Assembly (NCBI RefSeq): GCF_003704095.1
Contig: NW_020846006.1
Coordinates: 186,001 to 250,000, forward strand
Reading direction: 5' to 3'
Source: Pocillopora damicornis
Taxonomy: Eukaryota
DNA: 64,000 nt
Positions 4,534 through 64,000 of this stretch are shown one piece after another. Below the pieces are notes generated by a model, which made no database searches, was not told where the DNA came from, and worked only from the letters and a program-made list of their open reading frames with translations. A program made the translations under genes and the position numbers. Position 1 is the stretch's first letter; the number at the start of each line of letters is the position of its first letter.

Positions 4534-7500
4534 CTTACTGGACAGATGGTCCGGGTGAATAATTATTCTCCACACCACATGATCCAAAAAGCAGCAGAAT
4601 TTTATGATCTTAGTTGATTCTAAGATTCTTATTCTACTCCTTGCAGCCATATCCTCTTTCTCTTTTTCCTCTCAGGAAATTTTCCTAAAAACAGGTTAAT
4701 GATTGTTGGGTAAGGCTTTCGACAGGAAGGTACTTGATGTTCAGTTGCCCACTTCCCTTGAGAGAAACCTTTGTGAAATTTCAAATGAGCTGTTGTCCGT
4801 GGCTTTCCAAATTTTTCTTATTTCCTTAACTTGAAGCCTCATCAGTTTGTTATCTTTAATAGGAATTGACGAAGAGCTCAGTTAGTAAAATTATCGCTTA
4901 ACGGTTTGCGTACCGTATTTCTTAAAAAAGGAGTTCAAATTATGTTTTTTTGTGGGGTTTGGTGTACTAATTTGCCTACCTAGGTGAATGGTAATTGGTT
5001 AGAGGTGACCTTGTCTGAAAGGCTAATCAAATGAAAGTATTTTCACCTGCAGTCCTACAAAGTGTGAAATGTCCTACTGCATGGCGCCTGCGGGTCTGCT
5101 TGAACTAACAAGGTAAGACACCAAGGTGACAAGTCTTTAGAAGAATTCATTACGGATTCCTATTTTCTCTGTGTTCCCAATTCTTTCTCTCGTTTCATCA
5201 TCAGTAGGCCATATAGAAACCAGAAACACAGTAGTGATTACTTCTAAACCCAAAGTTGCGTCTCTCGTTCGAACCAACGGCCACTCTCATTCTAACAACC
5301 AGCGTGAAATACGACGACGTCGGACATAGATGTCTAGAAATACCTGAGTGAGACGCTTAAATCATTTTGACATTAGTTATTACGCGTGATGCATCGCAGG
5401 AATAGAAATTTCATGTATTTGATGGCGCACTGTTGGCTTGGTATCACGTTTAGACGCAAAGTAATTTACATGCACTTAGAGTAGATAACATTACAAGTCC
5501 CGCAAAACGACAGAGATTTATAACCTAATCCGTAAATCCACCAATGGCGTGCGGTTTCCCTAAGGATTTCAAGCCAAACAACCTCACTCCAAAAAGGTGC
5601 CGCGTAATTAATCAAACTTGACAGCTTTCATTAATTATCGCCAACGATAGGCGACAATCTGATTAAATATCTACGCCAAAGACCCGCCATGACAGTAGAA
5701 TTTCTTGAGGTGCTGCCTTGTTGCGGTAGATTGCTTTGTTAGTTTCATTACTTTTTTCATATCTAATAACAAGAGAGAATCTTCTATTCAAACGCCTTGT
5801 GTTGTAGTGATGAGCACTCGCAAATTAAAATGTTGATGTAGTGTGACTGGAATGGTGATTTTGCATCGAATGGATCAACGGAACGCCAAACTCGGATGAC
5901 GCACTTGAAGTAACGCTCAAAATAAAGTAAGTACACCGATTTTCTATTTCCCAAGTTCTTGAAATTGACGAGTGAATGCACATTGCACTTCTTATCTGTT
6001 GAAGACACCTCGAAATTAGGTGTTACTGTGGGGGTCGTCGATTTCCGGTAACACATTTCCTCGTGGTACGTTTTACGGGAAATGAAAACATCATTATAAG
6101 GCACTTCATTTATCTATGGATACTTTCCATAAGAAAAAAACATTTTCCAGTATAATTGTCATGCTTTTTTTACCACATGTAAGTTGCCCTCGCCGCCTTC
6201 TACCAAACTATTCGGACTGAACAGTTTAATTTTGATTTGATTCTCCACCTTAAATATGGGGAATCTACGAAGGGTGATTTTTGCACAAATGTTAAATGTT
6301 TACTCGTTTTTGCTTGTTGTCGTTTCTTGAAGGTTCTATTCTTTGTTTAACTCTGGTATTCGAAAATTTACAGTGGTGACTATTAATCAACCGCACTCGG
6401 TATTGTGGTTCTGGTCTATAGAGTTATAGAGCACAGTAGTTCTTCAGTGTTAATTACGTTGGAAAGGAGGGTGAAAAAAACCTTTAATACGCAAACTAAC
6501 AAAGAAATAGTGGGCTCCTCTTTGATTCAAGAGGGCGAGTATTGAACTTCACTTTGAACTGATTATTTTGTAACAAACGTAACCAGTGTCGATTGACTTC
6601 GCAATAAAAGAGGTCGAGTTCAGCCACAACCCTAGTGTATATGTGTCGCTTGAAAATGAAAATTTTGAAGCCCTTTAGCTGTCCTGAAATGCAAATTATT
6701 CATTATTCCACGATGTTTTATGTCTTAAAATGTAGGGGGTGTTTCTAACGAGAAGGGTAACCATTAGGGCCCAGATTCAAAGAGGAATTTGAGGAGAAAG
6801 CAGGCAATTTAGAAATGACAAACTCAAGTTAATTGGAAACGTAGAAAGAGTTATAAATCACTGCAAACTTTTGCCTTTAGTTTATGTGGACATTGTTAAA
6901 AAGCCAAAACGAACAATGAGCACAAAACACTCCTTTTCTCTCCTTGATTAACTTAAGTGTCATACTCTCATCCTAGATACGATTCAAATGTAACTTCGAA
7001 GAAGTGATTTTGGAAAGCAAGCGAGTCTCCGGGAAAGGAAACGATCTCCCTAAAATAAAGAGGTATTATTGACTCCTGCATTTAAAGCACATAACATGAC
7101 GATGATTCAGACTTAGACGGTTTGACATCTAGATGGCACGTTAAAACTGTCATGAAAAGATTTTAGACTTACTACAGACCAGAACTAGCCACAGTGACCG
7201 AGTTTTCACCATTATTGTTGTAGTACATCCGATTAAATTTTTTGGCATGTAGCATTCGCTTTTGTCTAGGAACCATTACTCCTCTCTTAAATAGTTCGAT
7301 ACACACTCAATAATATTTCCTTCCTTAGATGGCTAGCACTGCTGCTTGGGTCGAAAAACAACAGAGAGAACCAAAAACTCATAAACACTCCTCGCAAGTA
7401 ACCTTCGCGGATATTTTTCCACTCTGTTTAGAACCCCACAGTTTCTTTAAGTGTGAAGTGCAGATTAGTTCTAAATTGAAAAGAATTACTGCCTATTAGA

Positions 7501-8139
7501 AGATGCCATTTTCACACCCTCAAATGTTGCCGCAAGGTTCCTAGAGCATTAAAAAGTAGACGCGCTGGCGACTGAGGTGCGAAAGAAGCCAGTTCAACAA
7601 TACACAGCCGGGATGATGCAAGAAATCTCTTGTTTTCGTTTTGAAAACACCACTTTTGTCTGACGTACTTGACTGTCAAGCCTGTCGAAATAGCTTTCGG
7701 ATTTTCACGTTTCTAGTAAAATTGGAGAAGTTTATCATATGTATTAGATGATTAATACGCAGAAGTTTCTGAATTGTTAAAAGAAAGTGAGAAGCGAAGG
7801 GTTTTTCCTGAATATTCTAAGGTAACAAAACAGGATCAGCAGTGTTCGGTTTTTTCAACATTTAATAACTGAATGTGGATTAAGTCAAATCGTTTGTTGA
7901 TCCTCGGGCCGTTCCTTGGTTTTGACGCTTACTGTTTGCTAGTTTATCAGAGAATTCGGAGGAACCAAACTGAATGTATGATGGTTATGATACATAAAAT
8001 CACAGATAAGAACTCCAACAAAACAAATGAGGAGAATGCAGAACGAGCCAGTAGAGGCCAGCATGGCTTCGATACGGATATTAGGGCCACGATTTAAGGT
8101 CATCGTCATCTCTAAAGATGAAATGAATGAATGCATATC

Positions 8140-9146
<1,007 letters not shown>

Positions 9147-9194
9147 TGTAAGTCGCCCACGTCTTCTTTGTGTTAATACAAGAGCGAACACACA

Positions 9195-17400: not shown

Positions 17401-19111
17401 TGCTTTTACTTGGCAGAGAGATTTTAAATTCCATTCTATCAACTGCAAACAATTACTAAAACAATAGGAGGTGTGTCACCGCAGGGAAATGTACACAGTA
17501 CTGGTTCGAGAATAACTAGAAATGAAATACAAACCAGACGTAAGGAACTGGTTTGTTTTTAACCTTACCTTGACAATGATCTAAAAACGTTCGTGCTGAT
17601 TGTCACAAAGAATGACACGCCCACATGTTCCCGTCATCGGTACGGCAGACACCGCTAGTTGATGTTAAGTCCTTTATACCCCAATATCAGATGTCTTTTT
17701 TCTCATATCCTGTAGTCTAGAGGGAAGTTGCGCCTGAAGATAACTCAATTTAAGTTGTCTTTTCTCAAACATGAGAATAACATTGGATAAGTAGCACAAT
17801 ACTGGAATTTTGCTCTATAGTATTTATAATCAGTTTAATATTTCTAAAAGTTTAAATACTATACATCCGACATTCCTGATTTTCTATAGTTTTGGTTTTC
17901 GGTTGAGACAAATTTATCAAATGGTGGCGCGGTGTCACCTCAGACACTCAATCGTGGTGGGTATGGCATGTACCATCTCTTGTTTTTATGTCTGCACGTC
18001 TGAGGCGCCCGTGTATTAGGAAGAACAACGCGTTTTGTATGTGTGGTGTTTTTTTTCCGCAGGTTCCTACTCGTTGCAGTTCGATCAAGAGATCATTCGG
18101 ATCCTGTGCTTACGACAAGGGGCTCCTTAACGTGAACCCGAGAGGAAACTATATCCTCTGGCTTTTTTGAAATTTTGTAAGAGCAAATTGGAATATTAGC
18201 AACTAAAAGTGACTCCACTCTGATTTTCAAAGTCATTCTCAACCCCTCCCCAGGCACTTAGTAAAATTTTCTGGAGGATATCGTTCAAATTACTACGATC
18301 AAAGGGTGGTCGTGATACTCAGAGTTCATGCTGAGAACTAAACAAGATGCCGCTGCTCCAAAACGGCGGGGAAGCCGTGAGCCGAACGGTACTTTGCATT
18401 ATCTTAAGTATTGTCATAAATTTCATTGTGCATTTATCCATCGTAACCCTTCCTGCTTTTTAGCGCTTTGTTTTCTTTGGAAAATGATCTTAGTCAAATA
18501 AAATAAGGTTGACCTACAATTGTGGACTTAAATGACTGACTATTCGTTTCCGAATTGGATCGCACAATGTTATGTGCGCAATCTAAGATTGAAAAATTAC
18601 AGATTAATCTGTCTCTGCATCGAATACCTTTTCAAATGCTTTGCAAATTATGATTTCCCGTCCGGAAAGTGACAGAAATTGAAGTTTAACTGTGCTACTG
18701 TTTCCTCGCAAAGATGTGCCCCTCAGCACGAAAGTGTGGCAATGCTAGTTTGTATTTATTTCTGTCTTAAGTCGCACCACTTAACTTATACCACTTTTCT
18801 CCCTCTTACTAAAACTAGTCATTTCTCACTGCGCTGTGTGACTTCTAAAGTTTGTCCCAACAAGCGATGAAAGACTTTTCCGACGAAAGCACGGGAGTTC
18901 AAAGGGAGTGTAAATGTCTGCTTCCTGACCGCAACCTATTTACAGTATCTCAACGAGCCAATTAAGTTACAGTACTCCAGAGTCATGATTAGCCGGTTAT
19001 CAAAGCGCGAGACTGGAGTCTCCAGACTAACTTATATTGGTGCCAAGCAGCCGAGAAGTTGACTGCTTGTAAGAAATTTACCTGGGAAGGGACATAATCA
19101 GTTGAGGCAAT

Positions 19112-21455
19112 ATGTCTTCTAGAGTGAAATATGGCTCGGCTTTTTCCCCTGTCATCCCTTCTAAATCCGTCTTAAATCATCCTTTCTCCATTAAAAACCT
19201 GCTCAGTCTCTGCGACGACCGACGAGGTGAAGACAACGAACATAATAAAAGATTCGCCAATCTTTCCCCTGCCAGCGAAAACACGGCAAGGAAAACACGC
19301 CCCGTGAAAGAGGGCACAGGTTTGAGTGCAGCACAAGGTAACTTCGATCTAAACAGTGTCTGGCCGGCATGGGTTTATGCTACGAGATATTCGAGGCACG
19401 GTATCCCTCCAGGTTAGTTATAATATAAATTAGATTAAAAGATATGACGAAGCCTTGAAGCTACGTTATACATAAGTAAAGCGGTGCAACATTTTCTACC
19501 TTAGCAGACTCCCATCGGAACTGCAATAAATCATGTATGACCCGTCTCAACGTGATACATGAAATAGCACCTTCTTGGAGAGCATAACTTTTCACTTCAT
19601 AAACAGCTATCCAGCGTGCGATTTCTGAACTTGAATTAAATTTTAAAAAAACATATCTGTGAAACGTATTCTTTCCCCAATTTATGTTTCAATCGTGCAA
19701 AGGTTAACTTCTTAGGGTAATGCTCTTTTAAATAAATACGCTAAAAAGGGCTTGCACATCTAATACACCAAACAATAATACTCGCAATGAAATATAAATT
19801 TATGTGGCTTGCAAGCCTTTAGCTTAGGCCGTAACATTTTGTATAATGTTTGCGTCAGAATTTCAAAATACACACCAAAGGAGGTGAACAATCAGAGATG
19901 TGTCTTTAAATATAATACTAACATTAGGCCAATATCGTATAATAATTTTTTTTGAATGGTGAAGTGTAACATTTATCTATTCGAAGAGGAACTCCGTGAA
20001 CCACTACATATTCAGTGGGTAATTAGAAGGGGTGTTTACCGACCTTTTAATTGCTCGGAATCAGAACAGGAAAAGACATAAAACGAAGTTTCATCGGATT
20101 TTACAGCTGCCGGTTTCCCATGATCTGATTCTTTGGCGTTGTTTCTGTAGACATTGTTTGGGAGCTTTTCAAAGTGGAAAAAAACCGTCGACTGCATTAG
20201 TCATCACAATTGTTTAGATGTATCAAAGAAGTTGCGAAAACGACCTCAAAGGTGCTAACTAAGTTAGCCAAACATGATTAGCGATGGCTAAAATTATCAA
20301 TCACTTTCGGAAATATTTGGAAAGTTCAAACTGATTTCCTGAAGCGTAAAATTGAAGCTTAAGTGGACCGAATATGAGAGGACGCTAGCGGATGTGCTAT
20401 ATTTATTGGCTAAGAGTAACCTATAAGCATTTCCGCTGGACTCGTGTGTTCCCCACGCACACGCATACGAACAATACGTGCAATGGTAAACATCTCCACT
20501 TTAATAAAAATACAATGGAACTTCGGAAGCTGGCACTTTTGGCACAATCTGACGTGCAATTTACTGACGTGCCTGAATAAACGGAATCCTTTCAAAATGC
20601 ATTCAATTCCTCTGATTCACAGAAACCATTGTGATATTGATAGATTTGTCAGACTGAAAAAATGATATTTTACCGTGACCTGTGATACAGGTGGAAATTG
20701 ACATTGTTATATCTCACCAAGAGATTCTGGAAAATTTACGTCGGTAGCCGATGAGGAACACACATTACACTCAAGCACTGATTTAACAGTTCTGGTTCGT
20801 TGTCAGGCTTTGGAAAAAACTGCGACGGACATGAAGGTCATGAAGAGCAAAAAAAATGCAAGGAAAAGTTATGCTGATAACTCCCCAATCATATATCTGA
20901 TTTCTCAGTAAATGGGTACTTTCAGCTCTGAATGCGTCCTCTCCACGAACTGGAGAAATGCAGAAAATTGAGTTTGCCAACTCCTATGTTCATTTGCAGT
21001 AACCTGCACATATTGCAGTCTTTTGGGCTTAGTTGGTTGTTACTTTTATTTTTCTTTTTTAAGCCCAAATATTAACTATTACGGTTAAAGACCTATTATG
21101 TTATCAACTGATTTAACTTACAGCAAACTATGCAAACCCACGAAGGCCTCGCAAACCTATCAAGAGACAGAAGCAACGGCCTCTTTTCTCGCCAGAACAG
21201 CTCCAAAAACTCGAAGAAGAGTTTGTCAACGAAAAATACATCTCCAAGTCTCGACGGTGTAAACTAGCCGCAGAAATAAGCCTTACTGAAGCGCAAGTCA
21301 GAACATGGTTTCAAAACAGACGAACAAGATGGCGTAAAGAAGTACATGAAGAGGACGACGATCCCAGCTGGACCACGCACACTGGAATGGCAAAATATGA
21401 CGCTAGTGTCTTAACTGCTAACTGTATGATAGTACGAGGATATTGCTCATCTTGA
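19112..21455 (+). CDS. Divergent ANTP-class homeobox protein with eh1 and Engrailed EH2 motif (engrailed-like), 2 exons, ~210 aa
   Basis: Exon 1 19112-19412 (eh1 FSIKNLL 19184-19204; WPAWVYATRYS 19361-19393; donor AG|GTTAGT, phase 1). Exon 2 21124-21455 (acceptor TTACAG, phase 1) encodes ANYANPRRPRKPIK-RQKQRPLFSPEQLQKLEEEFVNEKYISKSRRCKLAAEISLTEAQVRTWFQNRRTRWRKEV-HEEDDDPSW...*. AATAAA at 21573. The gene model is secure; the family assignment is uncertain. Confidence 0.9.
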
Positions 21456-23664
21456 AACTGTGACTTCCACACAGATGCATTTACCCTCATTTTAAAGTCC
21501 TGTTAGTTACTTTTTCTCCGACAATAACACTCGTGCAGTGCAGTAAACTGAGTAAGAAGAATATTTGCCATCAATAAAATACGTGGCAAACCAAGGATTT
21601 CCAGGCAAAATGAAAGATAGAAGACAAAATTATTCGACAGATTGTGCGTGTATTTTCGGAGTTTTTGAGCAAATGAAAAATCAGCTTATAAAATTAACTG
21701 ATGCATTTTAGATCGGTAAGGAAATTTCCAGAATGGGAAATTAGATTGGCAGCCGTGATCACCATGGAAAGCTGATTATCCAGGGCTGCTGGTTAAAAAT
21801 ACGAGGCCTTGTACACGTATTTCAAGGAGGCGAGCATATTCACTGTGGCCGTTTTAATGATGAAAGTTACATTTTTTGTCACAGGACTCGGCTATAAAGC
21901 TGAAGTGCGGAAAAGCACAATCTTAGGGAGTTCGCATCGCACCATCGATGATTTGTTTCACTCGAGTTAGTTCTTCTACCACGGTGTTATTACCAGACCA
22001 TTTGCTTGTCAGGTTAGAGCGTGTCATTTCGGTGAATTTTGTACATTTTAATACCTACAGAAAATTTTTTTGTGAACGCACACTCTTAAAGAGGCGGTGT
22101 TGCGTTCCCAAGAAGGCTCTTGTGCAACTTCACCGACTCAAAAATCTTGCTTAACCAACTCTTGTTCTTCTAAAATTTAATTATAAGCAAAAAATTTTGG
22201 TTGGCAATTTTAAAATACATTATTTTCAAAGGATGTTAATGTGTAAGAGTGTACGTGTTATCAATCGTGTTCTCCATATGATGGTAACCTTGCCCGTGTA
22301 GATTATCTATGGACGTTCGAAATTTCAACGTTACAACTAGACCTATTATTTATTTCTTAGTTCATAAAAAAATTATGCGTCAAGCAGATTAATAAAATCA
22401 GTCGTTTAACCAACTGAATTGAGTTTTTACTCATTCCCTCAAAGACCACCTGGACTCGATATGCTGATAACCCCCATTATTTACCATTCTAAAGTGTATT
22501 CCATTATTATTTTCGGGAGATTATTACCGTGAGCTTTTATTCATTATATTCGGAAGTTCAAAATCAAATCCTCAGAGAAAGATGAAGCGAGAGAAAGACG
22601 TGGTCAATGCTTACTTTCCTTTACAATTTTAAAAAGGCAGTGTATTACACTGATTTCATCATTTCCTTACCATGCAGTGGTATACTTTGTTTCCAAGTAT
22701 TATGGTCATAACCGTACTCTGTTCCCCTTCCTTACCGAGAAGAAAAGGTACGTACTACTTCGGTTTAACGAGCGAAAGCAATACACTGGCCACGTACACG
22801 ATCTTTTTTTGTTTGAAACGATTCATAAATCGTGTAAGCAGCAGCCATGCACAGGTTTCTAGCCAAGAATCGCTGTTGTATGCATCGTGAAATGAGTATG
22901 TATCCTTTGTTAGCCTCTGCATGCCGAACTAGCTTTCTAGGAAAATGTGCTTTACTCATTCGCTTGTAAAAAGGAAAAATGTCATTTCATCAGAAAATTT
23001 GGTTCATCATATTCTCGACTGGTATATTAATAGGCCGGAGAATATTGTCTAAGTGAAAGTGTTAATCCGTTCCTAACCTACAAACGTTTACAGACACTTG
23101 AGTCAACAAAGAGAATACCAAGGGAGATTAAAGCATGTTGGCTCAACAACACTAGAATGTCCTTGGATTATTGCGAGCTTTTTTAGTACGAGGTAGGAAG
23201 GCCAAAATATGTCATAAGTGTTAATTGAGGATACTGTGAATAAGAAAATACTAATAGTATGTTCATTCACTTTCTTTCCGCGGCGCGGGTGAGTTCCTGA
23301 TCGGCTTAAATCTCATCGTCTGGTCGGTAAAGATCTGTTCTTCAACACTCCCACTAGCTCTTCTTGTAGAGAGAACACTGGAGGTGCTACTTTAAAATAA
23401 ATTGAATCGTGACCTGCCATATTTTTGTAAGATCATCGTTCCCTAATGGCGCTAAAAGATTCCTAGTCAGTTGTGAAGGCGCCGGAGTGAAATCCAAATG
23501 TCTATTCTACATAGTTTTATTTCCCGCCTTTAACAAGATCTTGTTCAATGTTATCGTGAGTTCACGGTGTTACCGGTTCTTATCAATAGAAAGAAACGTA
23601 AAAAGCTTTGAAGTTTCTCCCAAGAGTTCTAGAAGTAAGAAATACCGAAATCGCGTCTATCTAG

Positions 23665-46800: not shown

Positions 46801-49800
46801 ATTAGCCCTTTGTCTATTGCTCTGACGAAGGGCTAACACTCCTTTATGGTGGCTAATTTACGTTTTCAACTCAGTTGTTAACACTAAATTACCAGCATTA
46901 CCTTTTAAAAAAGTCAACAATTAGTCACCAAAGTGGATGTGACCAGTGGTGGATACTTTTTAAATAACTACTGCTAGCCACCGACTCTGAGATGAATAGT
47001 TGTATTATTATATACTAAATGTTACATGTAGAAAGTGATTGCAGCATGTTGCAAATGGTAATTTGTTCAATGAAATAATGCCAACTTCATGTTGCATTTT
47101 TTCAACTGGTTTCATGACTTATTATCAATGCTTTATTTCAGATACAGTACAAGTAGGATTTCACAATTACCATAATTGATTTAAACTAAGGTTGAGAAAT
47201 CCAACTGTTTTTGCCTCCTATAGGTTTTTAATCTTGGTGGAAATATTACCAGTTTGAAGGCTGCAAGGCATAATGTGATTGTCCCACAGCCCTACATGAA
47301 TGGTCCACATAGTATAGATCATGCTAACAGCTGTGGAATCCCTCCAGAAGAACCCAGGACACCTACAACCCCTCAATCTAACAACCACATAGCTTTTCAC
47401 CTTGTTTCTAAAGTTCTTGAGGATGAAAGCATTTTTAATTTTTCAAGCATTGAGGAAGCAAATCCAGGTGTAGAGCCATTCTCACCTCTTTCTCTGATAC
47501 ATCCTGATAGGTATGGTAATCCTTAGAAGTTTTTGTGCATGATAGTATCCTTAAGTGTGCCTGACCTACATGGATCACAAGTGACTAAATACGGGGTTGC
47601 AGAGGAAGCTTTCAACAACAAATCACATGCCTGTTTTTTCTCAATTCCTTTTTCACATGCACTTTGTAAGTCTTCTCCATGAACATTTTTTTGGTTGCAT
47701 GGAATGAAAGCAGGCAATCCCCATCTTGCCTGCTTGGGTAGCCAGTTACCGTAATTTCCGGTTGTTTACCCGCGGGTAATCTGTTGATTTTGCATTAAAC
47801 GTGCGCCACTGCAGGTAATAGGGAGGTGCTGGTTATGTGACAATTTTAAAATCTAGTGGTAGTTGAATTGAAAAAAATTATCACCACCATGCATTTCCAT
47901 AAGAGTGCCGCAAAGCGGCACAAAAACATGATGCTGACTTGAGTTTATTTCACGCATAATTAGTTGTGGGACGAACAAATTTTTATCAGCTCGCGTGAAA
48001 ACAAAACCTTGATGGTGACAAAAATAATCCAAAGATATTCGGCGCATCAGTAATAAATTTCCATTTAACACTAGCTTGAGCTAAAGAGAATTCTCCCATT
48101 TTAAGGGACTTGTTAGGCCCAATAGAATCAGAGATATCGATTTTTTTCAGAAATCGCCAACAGTACGTTATAATTCAAGTTTTAATACTCACCCAGTTTT
48201 TTTTTCAACAAATCAACATGACGCTGAATGATCGCTCGCACAAAATGTGGCCACAAATTCGCATTCTGTCAAGTATGAAACATTGAGATTTGGGCATGGG
48301 CTGCTAGTGTTTTTACTGTATAATCTTATCAATAAAGTACATGCCAATATTGACACAGAATTGTGCACGCGTCTGAATTTCTTTGACCTTTAAACTCGAC
48401 AAAGACACTTTCAAGTTTTCAAAAGTTGGATCAGACAACTTTTAAAAGACTGAAATGTATTACCTTAATGTCACGTTTTCACCACCAAAAAGTTGAATAA
48501 CATAATGTGCGGGTTATCCACCAGTGCGGGCAATCTGTTGACTTTTTTTTTCGCTGTATGCAATAATCAGCTGGTGTGGGTAATCGGCCGTGTGGGTAAA
48601 CGACCGGAAATTACGGTATATCTGTTACAGATTCCCAGGATTCCCTTATCTCAAAATCACACAATATGGGTATGGTTATGGGTTTGAGTATTCCAGCTCA
48701 AGTTTTGTTTGTTGTCTGTTTCAGTTTTGATGGCACATCTCATTCATGGCCCCTTTCAGCTGTACCCAATGGTACCATTCCAGTTCCTGCATCAACATCC
48801 AATCGCAGTAATGCAGCAGCTAGAAACTTTGGTTCTTTTCCTGGTCAAACTATCTGGTCATCAGAAGTGATTGCCCATAGCACCCCACCTTTGTCACCAG
48901 TTGATTTGTCCCCACCCTCAAGTTTAACAAATTCTTCACTGGGAACTACCCCTCCATTTCCCTCAACCCCATTAATTCCTGCAAGTTCTCTGACCAATTC
49001 ATCAGGCAGTACATCACCTACTGTGAATGGTTATAATGACGAACTCTCTCCCTTCCCATCCCCAACTGGGCAGCAGTTTGGCTCACAAGACACCTTGCCA
49101 ACTATGTTCATGCCAATTAAAGATGCATCTACAGGAGGCAAGGGATGGAACTCTTCAGAATCTGGTTACTATTCAAGTAATGGCTCCAGTCGTCGTTCTC
49201 AACCATCCCCAAGCTCAGCCCCTGGACTAGCACAATTTGTTTCTTCTCCTAAGACACGCCCACAGTCTCTAAATTTAACAAATGGCCACCATTACTGTAG
49301 TTCACCCAGTATGTCCCCTTCTTCACCGCCAGGACCAGTTCATAGCCACTCAGCTCCAAAGCATTTTAGTTCAAGTTATGATGTGAATGGAGGGTCATGG
49401 CTCAAACATACATCAGGCAGAGAGCATATTCCTCCAAGCTCTTTGCCAAGGGATGCAAATGGACATTCTGGAGGTCATGTGATTTTGCATCGTACTAAGA
49501 GTCCACTGACAAGTGAGCTGCACTATAGACTTGAAGAGTGTTATGAACAATTGCGGTGTCTAGAGAAAGAGCGAAAAAAGGTACTTGTTTGTGTGAGCTT
49601 TCACCTAATGGTTCTCCTTTTGGGTATTTTGTGACATGTTAAACACTGTATTCAGTGTAATTTTTTTAAATGTAAAGTCATGTTCATCACTTCAGTCTGT
49701 CACTCATCTTTATTTTAGATTATCGTTAGGCATTGCAAGATTTGTGCGCGTAAGATAATTATTCATTTTGCTGTAACTGTAACTGAAATGTTCTTTTTGT

Positions 49801-56136: not shown

Positions 56137-58773
56137 CTACAGCTTAGATAGGAGGACATCTGAATCAAAAAACACTACAGTGACAGTAATATCATCTCTC
56201 CACATACGTCTATATTGCTCTGGAACCAATAACATCTGAGCTACATAGCCATGGTCATTACCACCCAAGGCATGACGAATGAGATGAGTGGCTGCATTTT
56301 GTTCCAGAACTTCATCCCCTGCATCTTTGATGTCAGTGGGAGCTACAGCAATCTCTTTATCTTTCCTATCCTGCTGAAGAAAACTGGCAACCAAGCCAAC
56401 AGCTTGCTCATTGCTAAGAACATCCCACAAGCCATCTGTGGCAAGGATAAGGAATTTATCATGGGGTTGTAAACGGTGATGTGTAACAACAGGTCTTGCT
56501 GTGAGGTAAGGTGGAGTTATGTACATATTTGGTGGAACAATAGGACCCCCATACACCTGTGTGAGAACATGGGAATGGGTTACTTTATCCCACTTGTATT
56601 GAATGTCACCAAATGATCTTAGTGGCTGTAGTTGTCCGAGGAGACGCTTGTTCTTTATGACAAAGGCTTCACCAGGGTGCTCTAACCTAAGTCTCTCTAC
56701 TTCATCATCATTCTCAGCTGTCTGATCAACAGAGAGTGGAGTAGCCAACCAAGAGCCATCCCCTTTTGTACTTCCAAGAACAGCTCTACAATCACCTGGA
56801 ATACAAATTTAAAAAAATGAATCAATCACTTATCTTAAAATACAGTGACAGTTTCTCATCCCAAAAAGATAAAATTGCATAGTATATATAAACAATCAAC
56901 ACATATAATTGTTTTTTAGACCAACAAATAATCTCTAGGAATTTTGATAGACTACCTTCAGAGTGTCCCATGGCGTTGACTTTTCAAAGAGGATATGTAG
57001 CCAGGGAGCAGTCATTATTTACATAGAGTGGGGGAGGGAAAAGTATATTAGAAATATCAAAATTTCTATGAGCTCTCCCCCCTCCAGGCAATGAAAATAG
57101 CAAATGACCCCCTTCTTTATTCAATATTTAATTGATGATCCCTTGTCACCTCATATCTCTTCTTAGGGACTTGTCAGAAATTAGCAGGGGGGGAGGGGGG
57201 GTGGGAATTTTAAATTTGGGTTCGGAAATTAGGTGACCCATCCCTGCAATGGGAGTGAAATTTGCTAACCCTCCCCTTGAGCTTGGCCCAAAATATCATA
57301 ACCCTCCCCCTCTTGTATAAATGATAAAATCTAGTTCTTGCAATACACTAGGGTNNNNNNNNNNNNNNNNNNNNNNNNNNNNNNNNNNNNNNNNNNNNNN
57401 NNNNNNNNNNNNNNNNNNNNNNNNNNNNNNNNNNNNNNNNNNNNNNNNNNNNNNTCTGACGAAGGGCTAACGCTCGAAACGTCAGCTTTTTACCCTTTAC
57501 GATGGCTAATTTACGTTTTCTCTTCTTATATACCTAGTAATTATCAAAATTCATGTCACAAACAATCATAAGATGATTACTTTGCATAACACCCACCTTG
57601 AGCAATGGATCACTCTTAAAGTGTACCTCAAACTGCTGATCCTCCCTAAACTTCTTTATTAAGAGTTTTGCCCCCCCTCTTGCCAAACTGAAATAGCCTT
57701 GACCACCCTTCCTTTTCTTTCTTCCCTTCCCCCACTTTACATAAACAATGGCCAGTCCCTTTATTTAGTAAAATGACCTTACAACAGATATCCCCATTAC
57801 CATGTTACTGCTGTAATCCTCCCAGCATTACATAAATATCAGTAAAATGCAATGAAAAGACTGCTTTACTCTACATAGCTGATCATGTGTTACTGTCTAC
57901 ACACATACCTGTGTTTGCCACATAGATGTTTTGTCCCTCAATATAAGATACTAACGCACAAGCCCCTGAAGCTCCAGCAACAAAGGAGTCGTCAAGAACT
58001 TTTACTGGTATGGCTTCAGTAGAAATATCGTCATCTAATTGTGTAAAAGCCAAACTAAGGGATTCCTGAGTAGGCATTCGACCTTCAAAAGGCTTCCCTA
58101 TCAAGCTTTTGATAAAGTACTTTGGTCCTGTTTGAAAAACTTCTTGTTTTTGACTTAAAGTATAACCAAAATTGCTCTGAGATGTGCTTTCCATTGCTGG
58201 TAACCTGTCCTGTAAAATTTTAACAAAATCATCCCCTGAGAAACCTTTCGAGAGATTTCTCTCCAAGATGGTCAAATCAGATTTTGTAAGGAAAGATACA
58301 GCAAGATAGAGAGGTAAACGATTTTTAACCATTTCTGCACACTGCCAGCCACCGTGCCCATCAAATACACCAAAGGTTGTACCGTTTGTTTTCAATAACA
58401 GCCATTCATTGGCCCGATCTTCACACGGAGAATTGGAAGCGAAACTGTTTGTTTCAAAGTGAGATACTACTCCAATATTCACATTCACGCTTTTTTCATT
58501 CTTTCGCAAAATTTCACTGGCCTCTTTAGGACTTATTGGAGGTTTCTCTGAACCTTTAGGGCCCTGTACAAAATTATGGATCCATTTCTGCAAAAGGTCT
58601 CGTAATCCAACGGAGCTTGACGCATCTTCTTCTCCGCTGCCAGCACGAACCGTTAGGGACCTGTTGAAACCAAACGTGTACATGGAGCCAAAGAAAGCGG
58701 CTGTTGCGCCGAATACTGGCCATTTCCATTTACTCAAGGTTCCAAAAAATTCTGCTCTGTTCATTAGGGACAT
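56137..58773 (-). CDS. PDP1: Mitochondrial pyruvate dehydrogenase phosphatase catalytic subunit (PP2C/PPM family), 2 exons
   Basis: Exon 1 58773-57909 (first in-frame ATG; true start may be 58862, see findings); exon 2 56795-56137. Motifs SNSPCEDR, FGVFDGHGG, VANTG|DCRAVLG, RLLGQLQPLRSFGD, TPPYLTARP, FLILATDGLWD, NAATHLIRHALGG, RDDITVTVVFF. Likely co-orthologue of PDP1/PDP2. Confidence 0.93.
57455..57490 (+). ncRNA. Minimal hammerhead ribozyme motif with intact core (PLE type)
   Basis: CTGACGA-A-GGGC-TAAC-GCTC-GAAA-CG-TC-AGC: intact core boxes, 4-bp stem II, palindromic ACGT stem III, GUC cleavage triplet. The 5' strand of stem I falls in the N-gap. Confidence 0.65.
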
Positions 58774-58957
58774 GGGACGATATTTAAGATTCTTAGAACA
58801 AACTAAACGAGAAAAATCAACCACACCATCACGTGTTAGTTGTCGTCCCGTCTGAACGCCATAATAAAATATGTCATGATGGAGCTAGGATGGATGTTTC
58901 GCAGTTAGGATCCAGACTCTCTGAGGTGTTGCTCTACACCCTGGAAACGAGGTAAAC

Positions 58958-61101: not shown

Positions 61102-62740
61102 TTAAAATAATTGCTGGTCCTTAGGAAATGTTCCCATATATTTGCAAATGATTGATAGCATCACTTCATCTGCTCCACCGCCAATTGACAAAAGACGGTT
61201 GTCTCTATAAGCGCGGCTGACTTCCACTTCTGAAGTAAAACCCATTCCTCCCCAGAACTGCAGGCAGGAGTCAGGTACCTCTCGTGCAAGGCGACCAGCC
61301 TTGAGTTTGAGCATTGAGGCTAGCTTGTTGACATCTTTACCTTTCATGTACAGATCTAAAGCATAGAAAAGTAAATTAGTCAACAACTTAAGATAACAAT
61401 TTGTAATAACAGAGAGACCTAGAGTCCAAACATGGCACCCAAAGTGAAAAAAAGAAAAAACATTCAATAAAAGAAACAAGGATAAAACAAAAAAAAGAAA
61501 CACACACACACACACACACACACTTAATAAGCCTAATAAGAAGCACAAGTTCCTCTTTATGGTATGATAACATGTTTCTTATATAATCATTATTAAATTT
61601 AAAGAATTGGACCAAAGCATAGCTTTCTCTCCCTCTATGACAGTAGTAAAACTCTAACCAAAATTATTTAAAGCTGCCAAGAACCAACCTGTAGTTCTAT
61701 ATACAAGTGACCTGAGCAGTTCAACTTCAGTTTGAAGCTCAGCAAGGCGGAAGTGAACATACTGATTGTCTAGAATGGATTTGCCGAATGCCTTCCTTTC
61801 CCTGCAGTAGGTGGCAGTTTCAAAAATAAGTCTCTCCATAGACAACAGAACTAAAACAAAAAATATATCACATAAATAACAAGAAAAGGTATCTATTATT
61901 TTGATAAAAACCCTCAGCTAAATAAAATAAAAGTTTTACTTAGTAAGTCCATTCACTTTTGTTCTTATATTTATCATATCCTTTTACCACGAAAGGGAAA
62001 ATTTAGTGTTCATTAAAATAATAACTAAAAATAATTCTATCATTATGACTTTTATCATTACTATTTAACTGTAATATCATAATTTTTACCATTGTAATTA
62101 TGAATGTGACTTGTTATTATTACTGACATAATTATAAATAAACTGTGGCCCTGCCTTGGCAAGGGGTAACTCAAGATAATTTGGTTTTATCAACTGAGTT
62201 GATAATGTAACCTTGTCTCTGTAAAGAGTTTCTAAAGGTAACCCCTAAGTTTCAGAAACTTGGAAAACCCATACAAACTTACTCTACGGTTCACACTTCA
62301 GTACGTGATGAATATACAGTGTTCCTGATCTTGAGCCTTAAACTCTCTCAAACGTGAGCAAGAATTCTTTCTAGACTGATAATAGGAGTTTCTTATGTTG
62401 TCTTTGTTTTTTGGTCATCCTATAATACCTGAAGCCCCAGCAAAAACTCTTTCCTCAACAAACTGAAACATCTGGTAGGGAAACCCCATTCCTTCCTGAC
62501 CAATCAGGTATGACTGTGGTACTTTCACATCCTCAAAGAACAGCTCTGCAGTGTCTGATGAATGCATCCCAAGCTTGTTAATATTCCTTGCCTTATGGAC
62601 TCCAGGTAGATTGAGAGGAACACAGATCAAAGACTTGTTTTTATGCAGTGGACCTCCACTTGTATTCGCTAAAAGACAAATCCAATCTGCCTGGAGACCA
62701 TTTGTAATCCATAACTTGCTTCCATTTATGACAAAGTCAT
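61102..62740 (-). CDS. Acyl-CoA dehydrogenase, ACDH-6/AtuD (citronellyl-CoA dehydrogenase)-like; last three exons, 5' exons not found in window
   Basis: Exons 62740-62429, 61850-61689, 61355-61102 (all phase 1, GT-AG). Motifs INGSKLWITNG, KLGMHSSDTAELFFEDVKVP, RKAFGKSILDNQYVHFRLAEL, CLQFWGGMGF, YRDNRLLSIGGGADEVML. Confidence 0.9.
61500..61523. repeat. (CA)n microsatellite in the last intron of the acyl-CoA dehydrogenase
   Basis: About 11-12 CA units directly visible. Confidence 0.95.
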
Positions 62741-64000
62741 CTGTTACAAAAAAAATCATTTGAAGCCTTGTGGACACAGACAGTTTAAATAAACTGTTGA
62801 AATACTAAATCAAACAAATTATGGATACACCCATATCAGTTTTCCTTCTGGCCTTCTCTGCAAGGGCATACCCTTGTAGATTGACAAATTTATACACCTG
62901 TATCTACATGCTATGGCTATATAATTACATTCTATAAGTAAAAGGTGTTGCTTCTGTAGTTATCAACAGAAGTAAACTAAAATATAAAACACAATAAAAT
63001 ATAATAACAATGCAAAACCTTGCGTGTTCCTCAAAAAATGGAATTAAAAGGGAAACTTACAGCAATATTCAGGCCAGTCTATTATACATAGTTCAATTGT
63101 AACCCCTCTTGGTCACCTTAACAAGATAAACAATTCCATAATATAGGATTCTTTGTCCCATTTTCAGCTTGCTGACTCAGTCAAGATGTTTTGACTGTAA
63201 GCAGTCTGATAAATTAGCTGGATCAAAAATTAAGAGGTCTGGAATTAAGCCCTTGCTTGGTCATTGCATCATGTTCATAGGTAAGATACTTCACCATCAC
63301 AACACAGTACCTCTCCTCCAAGGGCATAAATGAGTAGTCCTGGGAAACAAGACTATGAGCAGTCCTTTCCATCACACAAGCAAAAAAAAATTCAGAGAAA
63401 AAAAATTGATGTTAGCACATCACAGGGAGCTCTTGATGCACTGCAGGGGCTTTATGAATGAGGCTCTCAAAAAGTAGGGACTACAGATTAAGCTCAAGAG
63501 TTTGACCTCCATGTTTGGCGCACAACAACAAAAATATAATTGGCTACTGGATGGATGTGTCAACTCTTCTCAACACTGCAGATTAATCATTGTCTGATGA
63601 CCTGTAGGAATGTTTGTTGCCACTTCTGACAATTTGTTTGCTAAAACCAGGACAGACAGAAGCGCTAGAAGCTCTTTTTGTTAGCAAAGAAGTTTTTATC
63701 AATTTTGCTAACCAGCATCGGAAAGATAACCTTATCCACTGGATAAATCATTATCCCATGGATAGCACAATAGGTTATGTTAACACTCACCAGGTGGATA
63801 GTGATTTATCCTTTGGATAGCATTAACCATTCTTTGAACAACTGGGTCCAGGGGTTTTGTCCCACAAGACAATCATCAAGCCCTGAAGCATATCCTTATA
63901 ATTTTATTGCTTAATGGCATTGTGGTGGAACAAGCAGCTCTTCAGTTATCAGACAAGGGCAAAGACTACATGACTTATTTTTCAGAAGACAAATTACAAG

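Follow-up and report, generated by a model that had tools for sequence, protein, structure and literature searches.

The 64,000-nt stretch of DNA analysed here (the window) carries on its + strand a two-exon homeobox gene with an eh1 motif, an EH2-type motif and a homeodomain, whose coding sequence begins at 19112 and ends at 21455. At this locus a Pocillopora coral has an ANTP-class homeobox gene that is intact, transcribed and spliced. Its family is probably the cnidarian counterpart of the bilaterian Abox/Engrailed (En) lineage, that is, an Abox orthologue or a joint Abox/En pro-orthologue, and not a one-to-one orthologue of En. We find that the gene is best assigned to the EH2-bearing genes of Abox type described in anthozoans by Copley (2023; bioRxiv 10.1101/2023.03.14.532566), in a small cluster with an Abox-like paralogue and Gbx, because it belongs to an anthozoan clade, carries the homeodomain residues E17, R52, E19 and R30, has the paralogue and Gbx in its surroundings and has the linker layout of a bilaterian group of genes, called group C below.

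The core finding and the main inference are already on record in the RefSeq names and in the preprint of Copley (2023). Added here are the RNA-supported splice, the shared phase-1 intron, the shared spacing of the RRPRKP linker and a flanking paralogue with a decayed EH2; introns are not mentioned in the preprint. Whether or not cnidarians possess an engrailed-lineage gene bears on the origin of the ANTP homeobox families and of the EHGbox cluster, and also on how old the docking of PBX cofactors by the hexapeptide's long EH2 form is.

Structure of the gene

Translation of the window letters gave open coding frames in both exons. The coding part of exon 1 (19112..19412) starts with the ATG at 19112 and comprises 100 codons plus one base. 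It encodes the motif FSIKNLL (residues 25-31, 19184..19204), an eh1 of the Groucho/TLE-binding type which in the Pfam scan weakly matched the eh1-like start of HNF_C and which sequence comparison showed to be kept in all orthologues. At the end of exon 1 lies the EH2-type motif WPAWVYATRYSRHGIPP (residues 84-100, 19361..19411), with the core WPAWVYATRYS at 19361-19393. The following intron of 1711 nt (19413..21123) is in phase 1 and has GT..AG ends, as seen both in the sequence and in RNA contigs; the donor reads G|GTTAGT at 19412/19413, the pyrimidine-rich acceptor AG ends at 21123, and the intron splits an Ala codon (G|CA). Exon 2 (21124..21455 including the TGA stop) begins with NYANP-RRPRKP-IK and leads directly into the homeodomain, so that the basic linker RRPRKP (21141..21158) is situated two residues before it. 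The homeodomain has 60 residues (21165..21344; Pfam PF00046, E 5.7e-20, 71.3 bits) and is followed by a 36-residue tail ending in CMIVRGYCSS. The C-terminal motif CMIVRGYC (21423..21446) is not EH5; it is found as [LMI][IV][IV]RGYC in coral, sea-anemone and Nematostella orthologues.

The 5' untranslated region covers at least 18994..19111, with spliced RNA contigs starting at 18994 (X5), 19044 (X12) and 19070 (X1); contigs do not fix the true transcript start, and 18994 is therefore a minimum 5' extent. The 3' untranslated region (21456..22413, end approximate) contains AATAAA at 22391-22396, and the spliced contigs reach 442-513 nt past 21900.

Transcription and splicing

Logan contigs were aligned to the region 18700-21900 for four RNA runs, each from a different study; being contigs and not reads, they do not give strand, exact ends or expression level. 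The 19412/21124 junction was contained in single spliced contigs of 1557, 1701 and 1271 nt (X1, X5 and X12; three of the four runs, three studies). These contigs skip 1711 bases with GT..AG ends, the reported position 19409/21121 with 'cut +3' being the same as 19412/21124. Their word depth (19.5, 40.2 and 5.9) was higher than that of intron contigs (about 3-7), which cover 19413-21123 separately and at low depth in poly(A)/oligo-dT RNA libraries. The contigs on the intron may stem from unspliced RNA or from carried-over DNA.

Further evidence for the same splice came from full-length orthologues of 208 residues found on contigs of about 1.2-1.35 kb. Such contigs are too short to hold the intron and consequently represent transcript assemblies with the identical junction. 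An explanation of the locus as a pseudogene, a misassembly or a chance pair of open reading frames is practically negligible: both frames are open, spliced contigs came from three studies and the protein is conserved in Scleractinia and Actiniaria. Nothing in its favour was found, and we regard it as ruled out by the spliced contigs and by this conservation.

Two further observations were made on the RNA contigs. One contig of run X6 skips 19639-19853 (215 nt, AA..GC), which is not a splice and looks like an indel variant or the allele of a sister species. The 3' untranslated region shows indels between 21473 and 21654, namely an additional ATG after 21488 in all four runs, a loss of 12 nt at 21617 in three and a loss of 8 nt at 21654 in one. 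The indels differ between the runs, which suggests that the RNA stems from Pocillopora of another genotype or species than that of the assembly.

Host, orthologues and conservation of the EH2 motif

Proteins were searched with a HMMER scan of 1.84 billion representative proteins using exon 2, followed by a word search using one full-length match. Exons 1 and 2 were searched separately, and the identical public protein P0182 served as the full-length sequence. P0182 is a RefSeq entry of 210 residues named 'homeobox protein engrailed-1-B-like' from Pocillopora verrucosa, a scleractinian cnidarian. Its residues 1-100 correspond to exon 1 and its residues 102-210 to exon 2, both at 100% identity, and residue 101 is Ala as predicted from the split codon. 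The RNA libraries containing the window stretch, from several studies, are labelled coral or marine metagenome. A word-filtered protein search with P0007 and with region 80-176 of P0182 returned only cnidarian relatives, the filter not bringing in En or Abox.

The protein is conserved across Scleractinia and Actiniaria under a variety of names. The orthologue of Orbicella faveolata is called 'engrailed-2-A-like', that of Actinia tenebrosa 'engrailed-1-B-like', that of Exaiptasia diaphana 'ceh-9' and that of Nematostella vectensis (P0194) 'HMX3' by NCBI; the orthologue of Oculina patagonica is a hypothetical protein.

The EH2 motif is kept as WPAWVYATRYSR[HQY]GIP in at least 15 separate scleractinian protein clusters. 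In sea anemones it reads [PS]P/SWIYATRYCRQGIP and the first tryptophan is gone. In the Nematostella orthologue EH2 is reduced to SSWLCIPGRS and the RRPRKP linker is gone, the homeodomain and the C-terminal VVRGYC being kept; this loss may explain why surveys based on Nematostella saw nothing resembling En. When the 234-Mb genome was searched with a degenerate DNA pattern encoding WPxWxYxTRY and one mismatch was tolerated, only the locus in the window was found to encode the motif, and the reversed control gave 0 matches. No second copy of exon 1, no second En-like gene and no match to the EH5 model PF10525 above the cut-off was found in this genome. The conservation in at least 15 scleractinian clusters and the single genomic locus argue that the motif is not a chance match.

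The earlier note on this DNA had recognised the order of elements known from Engrailed, namely eh1, EH2, phase-1 intron, basic linker and homeodomain, and all of them are present at the positions it gave. Its 19412/21124 junction is now backed by the spliced contigs, and its supposition of a cnidarian host agrees with the identity to the Pocillopora verrucosa protein and with the library labels.

Comparison of the homeodomain with Engrailed

The homeodomain of the window gene has the residues E17, E19, I26, K28, R30, Q50 and R52, and its helix 3 reads RTWFQNRRTRWRK. It can be assigned to the ANTP class by its Pfam match, its length of 60 residues, the lack of a proline at position 26 (I) and Q50. 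All 60 of the 60 distinct natural En homeodomains retrieved have K17, E28, K52 and IKIWFQNKRAK, whereas K17, E28, K52, I47 and A54 are all missing from the window homeodomain. Identity was calculated as the mean of the orthologue group over the 60 homeodomain positions. It amounts to 34.0/60 for the anthozoan paralogues, 30.5/60 for Ventx-like proteins, 29.6/60 for group C, 28.3/60 for Tlx and 23.9/60 for the neighbouring Gbx. En, in an essentially arthropod sample, had 23.4/60 (range 20-26, about 39%), the lowest value of the groups compared. This agrees with the statement of the earlier note that the homeodomain does not classify as En.

No natural En was found among the best 150 of the 17,642 matches to exon 2; the sole En-derived entry among these 150 was P0088, an engineered tandem engrailed construct. 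Among the homeodomains of the PDB, used as a similarity ranking only, single En domains scored 47-49 bits and stood behind Cll/Tlx (63), BarHL2 (58), Eve (55), Pdx1, Tlx2 and Gbx1. In the ESM Atlas the nearest clusters were Hlx and Dbx2 and En appeared only at ranks 9 and 12, these look-alikes being unspecific.

EH5 was searched for with PF10525 in exon 2 and in P0182, and no match was obtained at E up to 5. The natural En P0368, the positive control in the same Pfam run, did match PF10525, and all but three of the En matches carry a precomputed PF10525. The window gene thus lacks two defining features of Engrailed, the homeodomain signature and EH5.

WPAWVYATRYS agrees with the En motif WPAWVYCTRYSDRPSSG at 10 of 11 residues, a count made in the earlier note which we could reproduce with the natural En proteins P0258 and P0368. 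The tail of EH2 differs, being RHGIPP in the window gene and DRPSSG in En. FSIKNLL corresponds to EH1 of Engrailed, a motif that is not specific for En. All nine papers found to contain the string WPAWVY concern Engrailed.

Group C, the intron and the linker

Among the top matches a tight group of bilaterian proteins was found, which we call group C. It comprises sequences from a crinoid, sea urchins, an annelid, a spider, a mite, ostracods and a nematode, and no vertebrate is named in it; among its members are P0109 (Antedon), P0130 (Diadema), P0142 (Owenia) and P0116 (spider). The proteins have an eh1 and remnants of EH2 (WPQWLYAPDITRHPF in Antedon, WSPWCQPAGFGRPP in Diadema), the linker GRRPRKPG and the residue pair E19/K30. 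Judged from this range of taxa, the E19/K30 residues and the EH2 remnants, group C quite probably represents bilaterian Abox, a family reported as 'absent in Olfactores' (Copley 2023).

A phase-1 intron after the EH2 region is present in the window gene, in its paralogue and, within group C, in the genes of Diadema, Antedon and Owenia. It is likewise present, at G|PR.R, in true En-family genes of Anopheles and Molorchus. We found no literature statement on the position of the En intron and read it from these two insect loci instead. What follows the intron is more distinctive. The coral gene, Antedon, Diadema and Owenia have an identical layout of split codon, five residues, RRPRKP (RRARKP in Owenia), two residues and homeodomain. 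In En, PR.RKPKK follows directly after the split codon and is succeeded by a longer, variable linker. The use of this layout from intron to linker to homeodomain as an Abox criterion is our own choice.

In P0109, P0130, P0131, P0116 and P0119 the motif ARLKIAQRQGLW stands directly after the homeodomain. To the eye it resembles the core of EH5 of En, LMAQGLYNH; the Pfam EH5 model gave no match to this group C motif. If the likeness is real, group C would be tied to En. As a check on the Abox identity of group C, the 10-kb flanks of its genes in Diadema, Antedon and Owenia were inspected for an adjoining En; they contained none, which carries no weight because the Diadema genes are situated at contig ends.

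Phylogenetic trees

Trees were calculated from a chosen subset of the matches, leaving out multi-homeodomain matches and most Hox matches and with an arthropod-biased En sample. Two alignments were used, one with the 60 columns of the homeodomain and one with 68 columns including the 8-residue linker. Abox was represented by the probable Abox sequences of group C, not by sequences bearing that name. The anthozoan orthologues and paralogues formed one clade (starred), with 95/87 on 60 columns and 98/93 on 68 columns. In the free trees En grouped with Hox and Eve, and on both alignments the backbone remained open.

Constrained topologies were compared with the free tree by log-likelihood (lnL) and by the approximately unbiased (AU) test. 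Placing the cnidarian clade with group C changed the lnL by -2.39 on 60 columns (p-AU 0.39) and by +1.02 on 68 columns (p-AU 0.52); no tree obtained on 68 columns had a better likelihood than the latter, which exceeds the free search by 1.02 lnL. Placing the clade with En changed the lnL by -2.14 (60 columns, p-AU 0.40) and by -1.34 (68 columns, p-AU 0.46), and placing it with group C and En together by -4.19 (68 columns, p-AU 0.38). The tree data lean slightly towards group C.

Genomic neighbourhood

The window is part of a 280-kb contig (C2641), on which only three homeoboxes pass E 1e-6. Their order is the paralogue at 175.3 kb (+), Gbx at 194.3 kb (-) and the window gene at 205.1-207.5 kb (+). 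A Mnx-like homeobox was not seen on this contig at E up to 1e-6.

The Gbx gene lies in the window at 8140..9191 on the - strand, head-to-head with the EH2 gene and about 10 kb away. Open reading frames and tblastn place its homeobox exon at 8140-8574, and its first exon, with the eh1-like FSIESII, lies within 8817-9191. It reads as Gbx from its homeodomain, the assignment being made in this way and not by a family search. Situated head-to-head at about 10 kb, Gbx and the EH2 gene could share regulatory DNA.

The paralogue is encoded on the + strand at C2641:173412-175697 (L006:5412-5806 and 7318-7697), about 10.5 kb to the left of the window start, 30 kb upstream of the window gene and beyond Gbx. 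It has two exons, an eh1 (FSIKNIL), a decayed EH2 (NYPAWICNTSF), the phase-1 intron and a homeodomain with E28. Its counterpart in Oculina (P0221) keeps IPPWISNSHF. From these two sequences it follows that the 'EH2-less' anthozoan duplicates are not entirely EH2-less. Orthologue and paralogues share a chromosome or contig in Oculina, Orbicella and Nematostella.

Downstream of the EH2 gene there are a MEIOC-like exon (48666-49634, +), a PP2C phosphatase (56137-58824, -) and an acyl-CoA dehydrogenase (61102-62777, -). These neighbours are unrelated, and the homeobox cluster thus ends at the EH2 gene on that side. The whole window contains 491 N.

Assignment of the family and possible function

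According to Copley (2023), a convincing En outside the bilaterians is not known, and cnidarians were searched for EH2 in that work to obtain En candidates. EH2 genes were found in Acropora digitifera and other anthozoans, Pocillopora damicornis being among the core species, and reciprocal searches and phylogeny assigned them to bilaterian Abox as its orthologues. In contrast to En, the E17-R52 salt bridge is preserved in them; further anthozoan Abox duplicates have E28 and are described as having no EH2-like motif; and 'in some cnidarians ABOX is adjacent to GBX'. The window gene shows the features that Copley gives for Abox, namely the E17-R52 pair, the E19/[RK]30 polarity, eh1 together with EH2, and adjacency to Gbx. 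The preprint further suggests a single EN/ABOX gene in the common ancestor of cnidarians and bilaterians, clustered with GBX, MNX, NEDX and DLX. That the anthozoan gene has survived as the pro-orthologue of Engrailed and Abox of bilaterians jointly, as already proposed there, is in our opinion possible, with somewhat less than an even chance. If so, cnidarians would hold an engrailed-lineage gene that is still linked to Gbx in a cluster of the ancestral EHGbox type, and the nearly unchanged EH2 would be a working PBX-docking motif older than the cnidarian-bilaterian split.

Two alternatives to the Abox/En counterpart were considered. The gene could be a true one-to-one cnidarian orthologue of Engrailed whose homeodomain and C-terminus diverged and which kept EH1, EH2, the intron and the Gbx linkage. 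The EH2 match at 10 of 11 residues fits this explanation, as do the order of the motifs, the intron after EH2, which is in phase 1 like that of En in Anopheles and Molorchus, the adjoining Gbx as in the EHGbox cluster, the engrailed-like naming by NCBI, the fact that this is the only En-like gene in the genome and the failure of the AU test to reject a clade with En on either alignment. It is nevertheless improbable in view of the homeodomain, whose identity to En was the lowest of the groups compared, from which the five En residues are missing and to which En stands behind Cll/Tlx, BarHL2, Eve, Pdx1 and Gbx1 among solved structures. EH5, found in the control P0368, is absent, the linker spacing fits group C and not En, the free trees put En with Hox and Eve, apart from the anthozoan clade, and Copley's reciprocal searches and tree gave Abox.

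The gene could also belong to a cnidarian-specific ANTP family without special relation to En or Abox, in which EH2, eh1 and the intron would be old characters of the ANTP class that were lost elsewhere. This would fit the EH2-like double-tryptophan motifs known from Msx, Nk1 and Msxlx of cnidarians and the open backbone of both trees. It would also fit a homeodomain that resembles Ventx-like, Tlx and group C proteins to about the same degree, and an ESM Atlas ranking led by Hlx and Dbx2, in which En comes only at ranks 9 and 12. We consider this origin unlikely, since the exact RRPRKP with the same spacing to intron and homeodomain is common to group C, since E19/R30 is a 'HOX-like' polarity unlike that of Msx and Nk1, since the gene is linked to Gbx and since the full string WPAWVY.TRYS is otherwise reported for En only.

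Several points weigh against the assignment to the Abox/En lineage as we prefer it. No source names group C Abox, and NCBI calls one of its members 'barH-like 2'. The homeodomain identity to group C is no higher than that to Ventx-like proteins or Tlx, and the comparison with En depends on an arthropod sample. The phase-1 intron is common to the coral gene, group C and En and hence does not discriminate between them; an intron between motif and homeodomain is present in many ANTP genes. Finally, the AU tests reject no alternative (p 0.38-0.52), so that they do not separate Abox, En and a joint ancestor.

As to the other claims of the earlier note, the gene cannot be called cryptic or missed: RefSeq has engrailed-1-B-like or engrailed-2-A-like names for it in Pocillopora, Orbicella and Actinia, which means that it is annotated, and Copley (2023) had found these very anthozoan genes. 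The suggestion of a divergent En orthologue or sister gene survives in its second part, as a sister gene or joint pro-orthologue; a strict En orthologue fails on homeodomain and EH5, though the trees do not reject it. An origin of EH2 before the bilaterian split is not a new inference, having been proposed earlier for cnidarian Msx (PMC2655272) and for Nk1 and Msxlx (Copley 2023). According to this literature, families other than En do carry the motif, which the note itself had named as speaking against its reading.

By motif homology the protein of the window gene is likely a Groucho-recruiting repressor that binds DNA together with PBX. Its homeodomain, with Q50, would bind TAAT-type sites, and the eh1 would recruit Groucho/TLE for repression, so that the protein would act mainly as a repressor. 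The two tryptophans of EH2 would dock on the TALE homeodomain of PBX and bring about cooperative DNA binding, and the RRPRKP linker could serve as an extended basic arm or as a nuclear localisation signal. The link between EH2 and Pbx was made on Engrailed (Peltenburg and Murre 1996), and for eh1 we refer to Smith and Jaynes (1996). A PBX gene is present in the same genome (PBC domain with 105.8 and 85.3 bits), its homeobox being split by an intron. The locus offers a clean, expressed example beside Gbx and is suited to PBX and Groucho binding and expression studies in corals or Nematostella.

Comparison with known genes

Compared with Engrailed, the coral gene has in common the eh1, the EH2 at 10 of 11 residues, the phase-1 intron right after EH2, a basic linker of the PR.RKP type, the E19/R30 polarity and the linkage to Gbx. 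It differs in the recognition helix (IKIWFQNKRAKIKK in En, RTWFQNRRTRWRK in the coral gene), in having E17/K28/R52 where En has K17/E28/K52, in a C-terminal IVRGYC instead of EH5 and in a linker that is shorter and of fixed length, whereas that of En is longer and variable.

With group C the gene shares eh1, EH2 (as remnants in group C), the phase-1 intron, the linker layout and the residues E17, E19, K/R30, T47, R52 and W56. The arm of the homeodomain is RKPRQAY in group C and KQRPLFS in the coral gene, and position 28 is V in the former and K in the latter. In group C the homeobox itself is interrupted by a second intron, and the homeodomain is followed by ARLKIAQRQGLW, a motif missing from the coral gene.

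The double-tryptophan motifs of other cnidarian homeobox genes, that is, the EH2-like MH2 domains which Finnerty et al. (2009, PMC2655272) described for the Msx of early-branching animals and the EH2 motifs of Msx, Nk1 and Msxlx (Copley 2023), resemble the EH2 of the window gene in being Pbx-type motifs N-terminal to an ANTP homeodomain. Those genes differ in their R19/E30 (NK-like) polarity and in their homeodomains, the motifs being compared here from the literature. The closest correspondence is with the anthozoan 'Abox' of Copley (2023), which is the same kind of gene, with eh1 and EH2, E17-R52, E19-R30, a position next to Gbx and paralogues with E28, and from which nothing essential differs.

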